Shown: positions 10,084 through 11,352 of the stretch, piece by piece
Numbering within the stretch: the first letter of the stretch is position 1
Layout of the letters: the number at the start of each line of letters is the position of its first letter
Source: Saccostrea cucullata
Taxonomy: Eukaryota
NCBI RefSeq assembly: GCF_032062105.1
Contig: NW_026932690.1
Coordinates: forward strand, 186,001 to 250,000
Length of the DNA stretch: 64,000 nucleotides
Direction of reading: 5' to 3'
Notes under the pieces: model-generated
The model's input: only the letters and a program-made list of their open reading frames with translations
The model's database searches: none
What the model was told of the DNA's origin: nothing
Position numbers and translations under genes: made by a program

Positions 10084-11352
10084 TCAATCGAGTTCTATAC
10101 AGGAGTAAGGTGTTGGTAGGTCTTTACGCCGGCTTTCCTGTCGAACCGGAAGTCCGTCATTCTGTGCATTTCCTGGCCCATTTCCGGGTGTTTCCGGTTC
10201 TATCGAATCGTTCTTAACATGAACGTCCCAATATTCCTTTTGTGAATCTTTCTGATTCTTCTTAGTCGCCTTTACCTGAACGTTAAAATATTCTCGATGT
10301 GAGCCCTTTTTGGCTTTTTTTGGCGGACGTACTCGCTCACAAAGTCCATCTTGTACATCTACATTATAATATCCGGGGCTTTTCTTCTGTGAAATATGGC
10401 GGACGGCTAGGAACCCGTTTTGAGATTTCCACTGATCGTAAGGCGTGGCATAGGTAGAACTCCGTTTGGTGGTGATAGCGTCACTAGGGTCGGTGTAGTT
10501 AGTCTTAGTCTGGGCTACCTCGCTGTTATTTATTATATTTCTAAATAAAGCAGAAAATAAGTACTTACTACAGATTTCAGTTCATGCATCTCACAGAGAC
10601 ATAAAAATAAGAAAACAGCTCTAAAACTTGTACTTTGCAAGCCAAAGCTTCCAAACCTTCTAAAACATGCCCCCTTTTCTAAGTTTAAGAAATTCTTTAA
10701 AGAATTTGGTTCTTAATCTTATATGAATTTAAGTACTGGGAGTTTGCCATTTATTCTCGTTAAAGTCCCCCATCACCCCACCCCTCCAGACTTTATATCC
10801 TGGATCCACCCAAATGTTCTTTTTTCAGCGAGATATTTTTATTAGCATATTTCACAGTAAACAATGTTACATGTAGACCTATGGTTTGTTATTTTCTTCC
10901 TTTTATAGAAATATTTCCACAGCTTAAAACACTTGAGTATGATTTAATATAGGGAGGAAACAATATGTCGATGGCTGAATTCGATCGAAAACCTGCCTAT
11001 TGCCAATAAACAGAAAAACCTTAAAAGTCTTGGTTTATCATTTTCGAGTCTGACAATCTGGACTTTAGCTCATAAATTATAACAATATTTTCTTTCCTTT
11101 TTACCCAATATTTATTATTTAAATGAAAATACTTTAAGAATATTACATATATGTTCTCTTTTCTCTCATTCATACATTTAAGATTTTCTTTACCTAAAAA
11201 GGCTTTTCTTCAGATCGAAGAAAAAGAATAGACACATACCTGTTTCTCTGTCGGTAGCAAAGGAAACAAATCAGGATTATAACTAAAGTTGTGAACACTA
11301 CTATCCCTCCAATTAGAGCAATAGCGATTTCTTCCCCATCAATAAAGGCCAT
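10084..11352 (-). CDS. Putative transmembrane adaptor protein (LAT/NTAL/PAG-like architecture), 189 aa; coding exons 11352-11240 and 10540-10084
   Basis: [37 protein letters not shown](R); donor AG|GTATGT, acceptor CTTTATTTAG|A, phases compatible. Stop-free, GC-elevated 152-codon tail exon: [57 protein letters not shown]. Confidence 0.8.

Follow-up and report, generated by a model that had tools for sequence, protein, structure and literature searches.

A candidate palmitoylated transmembrane adaptor in oysters and its kinship with a neighbouring receptor

Can a transmembrane adaptor protein (TRAP) be found in an oyster, and can its birth be followed? TRAPs have been described almost solely from vertebrate leukocytes, and the birth of domain-less, fast-evolving genes is hard to trace. 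The question is raised by a small gene at 10084-11352 on the minus strand of a 64,000-nucleotide stretch of the genome of Saccostrea cucullata (assembly GCF_032062105.1, contig NW_026932690.1, positions 186,001 to 250,000), hereafter called the window. The letters of the window contain not a single N. The gene is real and conserved, and belongs to a RefSeq-annotated, uncharacterised bivalve family. Its product, as judged from sequence, is probably a type III (leaderless, N-out) single-pass palmitoylated transmembrane adaptor of pteriomorph bivalves, TRAP-like by convergence.

The gene consists of two coding exons. When 11352-11240 is joined to 10540-10084, a reading frame of 570 nucleotides results, which encodes 189 amino acids (aa) and a stop codon. 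Coding exon 1 (11240-11352) contains Met1, an acidic N-terminus of 8 aa, a transmembrane helix, a CxxC motif, a basic stop-transfer stretch, and a phase-2 GT donor. It is followed by a canonical GT-AG intron of 699 nucleotides (10541-11239, phase 2) with a pyrimidine-rich AG acceptor. Coding exon 2 (10084-10540) encodes a disordered cytoplasmic tail of 151 aa and the stop codon. This spliced product had been proposed in an original prediction made from the letters alone, where it was described as hidden. The 189-aa model is identical to RefSeq LOC134235793, an entry annotated as “uncharacterized” and matched by a search with the tail exon. The protein is therefore hidden only from the mechanically made list of open reading frames, which does lack it. 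Homology searches were queried with single exons (the tail exon) or with proteins of other species. The tail exon is single copy in the S. cucullata genome.

Orthologues of 182-201 aa are found in S. echinata, Ostrea edulis, Crassostrea virginica (LOC111135871), C. gigas (LOC117683701), and many Logan contigs. A profile search also recovers a pearl-oyster homologue, Pinctada imbricata FSP39_016014 (229 aa, E 1.7e-12), and one homologue of the same type from ENA. No homologue was found by this search outside Ostreidae and Pteriidae, within its limits of word matching and length. A phmmer search against 1.8 billion representatives returned, beyond family members, bacterial repeat proteins only; these were rejected as composition-driven.

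Exon 1 and its phase recur in S. echinata and O. edulis, where the intron is 1032 and 529 nucleotides long, respectively. Saccostrea and Ostrea have the intron in an identical codon and in the same phase; in Pinctada it is also in phase 2, a few codons further on. The same exon junction is seen in Crassostrea when the spliced contig L004 is aligned to the unspliced contig L013. The gene is flanked by an FBO_C F-box gene and, on its other side, by a head-to-head gene. O. edulis and C. virginica keep both neighbours, and the head-to-head gene is kept in S. echinata as well. The original prediction had named a ratio of nonsynonymous to synonymous substitution (dN/dS) near 1 among orthologues as a sign against it. 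The ratio is far from this neutral value, at 0.106 for S. echinata (confidence interval 0.06-0.18) and 0.098 for O. edulis, both by the Nei-Gojobori method. By the same method, dS to Crassostrea is saturated.

The N-terminus ahead of the membrane has a net charge of -3. The hydrophobic transmembrane core (I9-I28, 11269-11328, KD21 2.98) has neither a charged residue nor an extracellular Cys. Directly after it comes the CxxC motif (CFLC, residues 29-32, 11257-11268), a predicted palmitoylation site, and then the basic stretch RQRNR. Each of these elements is as first predicted. The CxxC is present in 7/7 full-length homologues checked, Pinctada included, and 2-8 residues stand ahead of the membrane in 7 homologues. 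In the AlphaFold model of an orthologue, the transmembrane helix is the sole confident element, with a predicted local distance difference test score (pLDDT) of 80-88; the tail scores below 50. No Pfam family is above its cut-off for the adaptor orthologues, a sequence search of the PDB gave zero relatives, and the Atlas structure matches all have TM values below 0.33. All features of palmitoylated TRAPs (pTRAPs) that can be judged from sequence are thus found together: a leaderless outside part of a few residues, a single N-terminal transmembrane segment with a basic cytosolic flank, a CxxC, and a tail with several conserved Tyr motifs and no catalytic or folded domain. This leaderless architecture of membrane segment, CxxC, and Tyr-bearing tail is conserved from Saccostrea through Pinctada.

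The tail carries all the tyrosine motifs that had been listed for it: YTDP (Y53), YATP (Y68), YYNV (Y95), YFNV (Y122), YWDV (Y141), and TPYSCI (Y183). Selection in the disordered tail is concentrated on these motifs. In nine oyster sequences, the positions from Tyr to +3 are 91% identical, compared with 57% in the remaining tail. The proximal YxxP pair (10435-10497; Y53 in YTDPSD, Y68 in YATPYD) is common to the tail of a neighbouring receptor and to the pearl-oyster homologues. Pinctada retains the pair and has a third YxxP. The central part of the tail (10216-10371) holds three Y-aromatic-[ND]-V-x-V repeats at Y95, Y122, and Y141, which do not occur in the receptor paralogue. The first two are YxNV, and in these the Tyr, Asn+2, and Val+3 are invariant in oysters; the +1 position is variable. 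Two YxN motifs alone are within chance expectation (shuffle p 0.12). Two YxNV motifs are beyond it (shuffle p 0.0008), with a pattern that is partly post hoc. The C-terminal TxYxxI/V motif (Y183, 10087-10113) corresponds to PYSxxxL in all homologues, including Pinctada. By consensus we take the Y183 motif to resemble an immunoreceptor tyrosine-based switch or inhibitory motif (ITSM/ITIM), or a Csk site, and its binding is presumed accordingly.

The original prediction read the YxN motifs as Grb2 sites. Asn+2 is the determinant for SH2 domains of the Grb2 group (PMC9783222), and the consensus is matched. Grb2 is one candidate only, however. In the central repeats, hydrophobic residues occupy the +1, +3, and +5 positions almost without exception, and this pattern is the consensus for type II SH2 domains, the N-SH2 of SHP2 among them (PMC8007070). 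The central repeats would thus suit SHP2-type as well as Grb2 binding. Their -2 position is a poor fit to the SHP2 N-SH2 consensus.

An adaptor of this kind should be without an ectodomain. Because in-frame stops precede the ATG in spliced orthologue contigs, it is clear that the oyster protein has none. Such a stop lies 2 to 6 codons ahead of the ATG in three spliced contigs (L004-L006), and in-frame stops upstream of the ATG are also present in the genomes of S. cucullata, S. echinata, C. virginica, and Pinctada. The leader of contig L004 is colinear with genomic DNA. In the window, the probable 5' leader (11353-11489, minus strand) has an in-frame TGA at 11397-11395.

The leader also contains an out-of-frame upstream open reading frame (uORF) of 12 codons, at 11422-11384 on the minus strand. 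Since the leaders of S. echinata and Crassostrea likewise carry short uORFs, translational control is possible. Upstream of the leader, a conserved non-coding block with GGAA-core elements (11490-11573, minus strand) can be aligned in five oyster lineages, and the 5' end of contig L004 falls just downstream of it. The block is probably the promoter, although a start site cannot be proved from where a contig ends. In the Crassostrea genomic contig L013 (3995-4040), small indels set the 5' end of exon 1 apart from that of L004, and the ATG appears to be shifted. This N-terminal polymorphism is consistent with an unconstrained ectodomain of a few residues. A 143-aa gene upstream of the Pinctada adaptor was rejected as a transposon-like fragment.

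Where could such a gene have come from? The upstream neighbour, which lies head-to-head with the adaptor, is a type I membrane gene with several exons; a tandem duplication of ~18-21 kb has left two copies of it. Copy B (33460-47479, plus strand; LOC134235790) is a complete type I receptor with a signal peptide, an ectodomain, a T-rich stalk, a transmembrane exon (46514-46625), and a tail exon (46717-47479). A genome search with the receptor tail exon finds, besides itself, the adaptor tail alone (E 0.026). HHalign aligns adaptor and receptor with 97.4% probability (E 1.5e-11) over 69 columns that span the membrane segment, the Cys cluster, and the YxxP pair. Between the tails alone, with the membrane segment left out, z is 5.8-8.9 in oysters, and the pearl-oyster type scores 4.2-5.1. 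In both genes a phase-2 intron splits an Arg codon right after the Cys cluster. The profile alignment, the tail scores, and the common intron together mark the two proteins, by sequence comparison, as paralogues over the transmembrane segment and the first 45 residues of the tail. The receptor tail has no YxN, so the YxNV sites are specific to the adaptor.

On the simplest reading, the two final exons of the receptor (membrane segment and tail) would have been duplicated in inverted orientation to give the adaptor, and the YxNV sites would have been gained later. The direction of the duplication is unrooted, because Pinctada has the adaptor while no receptor match was found there within 10 kb of it.

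The neighbour represents an undescribed oyster receptor family, possibly with a lectin-like ectodomain. The ectodomain of ~290 aa has no Pfam match, its AlphaFold model is unusable (pLDDT 30), and its resemblance to C-type lectin receptors is an Atlas lead at 0.85 only. The Tyr motifs of the receptor tail (46717-47479, plus strand), namely YMEIPL, several NPY/SPY, and a terminal NPYM, are conserved in Saccostrea and Crassostrea. Copy A (16195-25415, plus strand) has the signal peptide and ectodomain exons and no transmembrane segment. Its stalk-exon donor at 25384 is AT, not GT, and no transmembrane exon follows; the ectodomain exons look intact. Copy A is either a secreted ectodomain or a pseudogene. 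The duplicated blocks (11240-25440 and 29970-46500) show a DNA identity of 65-88% where they can be aligned. The second block includes a degraded second copy of the adaptor's exon 1 and leader (29973-30265, minus strand), with ATG changed to ATA, frameshifts, a lost donor, and no tail exon. Isoform X10 of RefSeq LOC134235790 (P0019; 16428-47479, plus strand) runs from the first exons of copy A into the last ones of copy B, without a signal-peptide exon. This model is probably a chimera, annotated across the two tandem copies. C. virginica, too, has a copy without a canonical transmembrane segment and tail, LOC111135842, which adjoins the adaptor; LOC111135821 is complete. These two copies are far more alike than copies A and B, so the pair may stem from a separate duplication event or be an artefact of assembly.

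Other features of the window lie around these genes. FBO_C (FBXO9-like) F-box exons at 1534-3063 on the plus strand match the C. virginica gene and serve as a syntenic marker. A 29-bp minisatellite (7236-9288) lies directly downstream of the adaptor, and 166-bp satellite arrays (13810-15226) lie between adaptor and receptor. An intron of copy A contains a 25-bp minisatellite (18441-19116). A C2H2 zinc-finger gene has a long exon at 55551-57560 on the minus strand.

How might the adaptor work? With charges of -3 before and +3 after the membrane segment, the protein would be inserted N-out by its signal-anchor, and the CxxC would be S-palmitoylated. A partner receptor, plausibly the head-to-head lectin-like receptor, would then fire, and the tail would become a substrate for kinases of the Src or Syk families. 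Grb2 could dock on the two pYxNV sites, with Ras-ERK as output. In addition or instead, the tandem Y-aromatic-[ND]-V-x-V sites could recruit SHP2 or another type II SH2 protein. SH2 domains of the Crk/Nck/Abl type may bind the pYxxP pair, and the terminal TxYxxI may recruit a negative regulator (Csk or SHP). The S. cucullata genome has at least 54 SH2 matches.

Expression data place the C. virginica orthologue in immune cells. In haemocytes of C. virginica sorted by fluorescence-activated cell sorting, the orthologue has a baseMean of 2751 by RNA-seq, and in the table of circulatory versus mucosal agranulocytes its log2 fold change is -1.24 with an adjusted p of 0.038 (PMC13070813, supplement). 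We infer that it is higher in circulating agranulocytes, because the negative side is the minority in this table. Both C. virginica neighbours are listed in the table of mucosal agranulocytes versus granulocytes, with baseMeans of 5443 and 1013 (PMC13070813), and the proximal copy LOC111135842, which has no transmembrane segment, is expressed in haemocytes. The C. gigas adaptor identifier was not found in the eLife single-cell RNA-seq supplements, where it possibly stands under another identifier scheme. An IgR-Syk-ERK pathway has been reported for oyster haemocytes (PMC6994640). It is conceivable, and we suggest it tentatively, that the adaptor is an invertebrate analogue of LAT or SCIMP, made independently from the transmembrane and tail exons of its neighbour, and that it now acts as a haemocyte Grb2/SHP2 hub for this receptor or for IgR-Syk-ERK. 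The locus would then hold a trio of a full receptor, an ectodomain without a membrane segment, and an adaptor without an ectodomain. The adaptor is a concrete candidate for a link between haemocyte Syk and ERK in a farmed species.

Several observations weigh against an adaptor, or against this use of it. Y141 is replaced by Phe in Ostrea, and C. virginica has lost Y53. The YxNV pair is only partly retained in Pteriidae, where one homologue (P0018) has a single YLNV and another (P0015) has none. All four distal motifs also match the YxxPhi sorting consensus. In the Atlas, the score for SCIMP is borderline, with 166 shared features against a guide of 170, and non-adaptors such as FAM163 and opalin are ranked as well. 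Expression in haemocytes is expression in immune cells, not specificity for them. Partnership with the neighbouring receptor is plausible, the evidence for it being synteny and co-expression.

The YxxPhi matches point to another function, that of a small endosomal or lysosomal membrane protein comparable to SPAR, hemotin, or LAPTM-type proteins, in which the Tyr motifs would serve for sorting or for docking of Nedd4 or adaptin. Y95, Y122, Y141, and Y183 do match YxxV/I, SPAR and Hemotin give weak sub-threshold Pfam matches over the membrane segment, and the Phe at position 141 in Ostrea means that one site need not be phosphorylated. In two of the adaptor's motifs, however, Asn+2 never changes although +1 does, and a hydrophobic +5 is conserved, neither of which YxxPhi requires. 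Val is moreover weak as a Phi residue, the YxxP pair is no sorting signal, and a PPxY motif is absent, which leaves this function unlikely. An equally improbable role is that of a truncated receptor that modulates its paralogous neighbour, either by pairing with it through the membrane segment or by competing for a YxxP partner, as a co-receptor or a dominant negative; it would tune this one receptor and not be a scaffold of general use. The two proteins have the membrane segment and the YxxP pair in common, the head-to-head linkage is seen in four species, and all three genes are expressed in haemocytes. Yet two thirds of the tail has its own conserved motifs that are missing from the receptor, the receptor match is lacking within 10 kb in Pinctada, and the genes fall in different differential-expression contrasts.

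A combination of Grb2, SHP2-type, and YxxP sites is also typical of proteins that dock to receptor tyrosine kinases. The protein could serve outside immunity, as a phosphotyrosine docking partner of receptor kinases (growth-factor, adhesion, or neuronal), similar to FRS2, Gab, or Dok, with an incidental expression in haemocytes; the neural proteins FAM163 and opalin in the Atlas list would agree with this. The high counts in sorted haemocytes, the higher level in circulating agranulocytes, and the lack of both a PTB and a PH domain speak against such a role, which we regard as quite unlikely. Least probable is the reading of the gene as the 3' terminus of a longer receptor with missed ectodomain exons. 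The original prediction had itself pointed to an upstream coding exon joined through an acceptor near 11385, and AG dinucleotides at 11385-11384 and 11355-11354 could indeed serve as acceptors. Both are in phase 2, while the transmembrane exon of the paralogue opens in phase 1, and neither is conserved. The in-frame stops and the colinear L004 leader described above leave such an exon unsupported, and upstream ectodomain exons were rejected on these grounds. Further, the divergent gene starts 4.8 kb upstream, and the annotated models in five species all begin at the homologous Met. A TRAP-like adaptor thus remains the preferred reading.

How does this adaptor compare with those already known? 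In the literature searched, which excludes most subscription journals, no example of an invertebrate TRAP was found, which is not proof of absence; nor were the adaptor gene identifiers found in the main text of papers. Dimeric adaptors bearing the immunoreceptor tyrosine-based activation motif (DAP12, FcR-gamma, CD3-zeta) were rejected as a model, as the oyster protein has no acidic residue in the membrane, no extracellular Cys, and no YxxL-x6-8-YxxL. The nearest Atlas feature neighbours are SCIMP (0.92), FAM163, vaccinia A36 (0.89), GAPT, LIME1, and PAG. Homology to LAT, NTAL, PAG, or SCIMP was rejected, with no family match above threshold: SCIMP (PF15050) has no Pfam match, PAG1 (PF15347) reaches at best 16.9 bits over the transmembrane region with a cut-off of 27, and LAT families are absent among the Pfam matches of four orthologues up to E 1. 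The original prediction had called the likeness architectural and perhaps convergent, and these results agree with it.

SCIMP is of similar size and likewise leaderless. It is a pTRAP of phagocytes with sites for Grb2, Csk, and SLP65/Syk (PMC9052152). It differs from the oyster adaptor, which has no evident proline-rich SH3 segment, and the clusters of SCIMP and its like (GAPT, LIME1, PAG1) are chordate-only. The resemblance to vaccinia A36 (Orthopox_A36R) is below the Atlas threshold of 0.9 and is a lead only. A36 is an independently evolved transmembrane scaffold with Nck (YxxP-type) and Grb2 (YxN) sites. It is a viral actin-tail protein and has no homology to the oyster adaptor.

The tail of the oyster adaptor is Lys-rich, unlike that of LAT, which is acidic. 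The pTRAP class is defined, for LAT and NTAL (LAT2), by an extracellular peptide of a few residues, a single transmembrane segment, a juxtamembrane CxxC, and a tail with YxN motifs (PMC4861716, PMC2196071). The oyster adaptor shares this layout, with an unstructured tail and YxN motifs of the Grb2 type. NTAL has 5 YxN sites and the oyster adaptor has 2; LAT and NTAL have 11 exons (PMC2196071), compared with 2 coding exons in the adaptor.

The one true paralogue among the systems compared is the neighbouring receptor (LOC134235790, or LOC111135821 in C. virginica), with which the adaptor shares the membrane segment, the Cys cluster, the phase-2 intron, and the pair YxDPxD...YxxPYD. The receptor differs in its signal peptide, its ectodomain, and a longer tail with NPY/SPY in place of YxN. 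Unlike LAT and NTAL, the oyster adaptor has an origin that points to a neighbouring bivalve receptor. With this likely parent module adjoining it, the locus is one at which the probable birth of an adaptor from a receptor can be traced.
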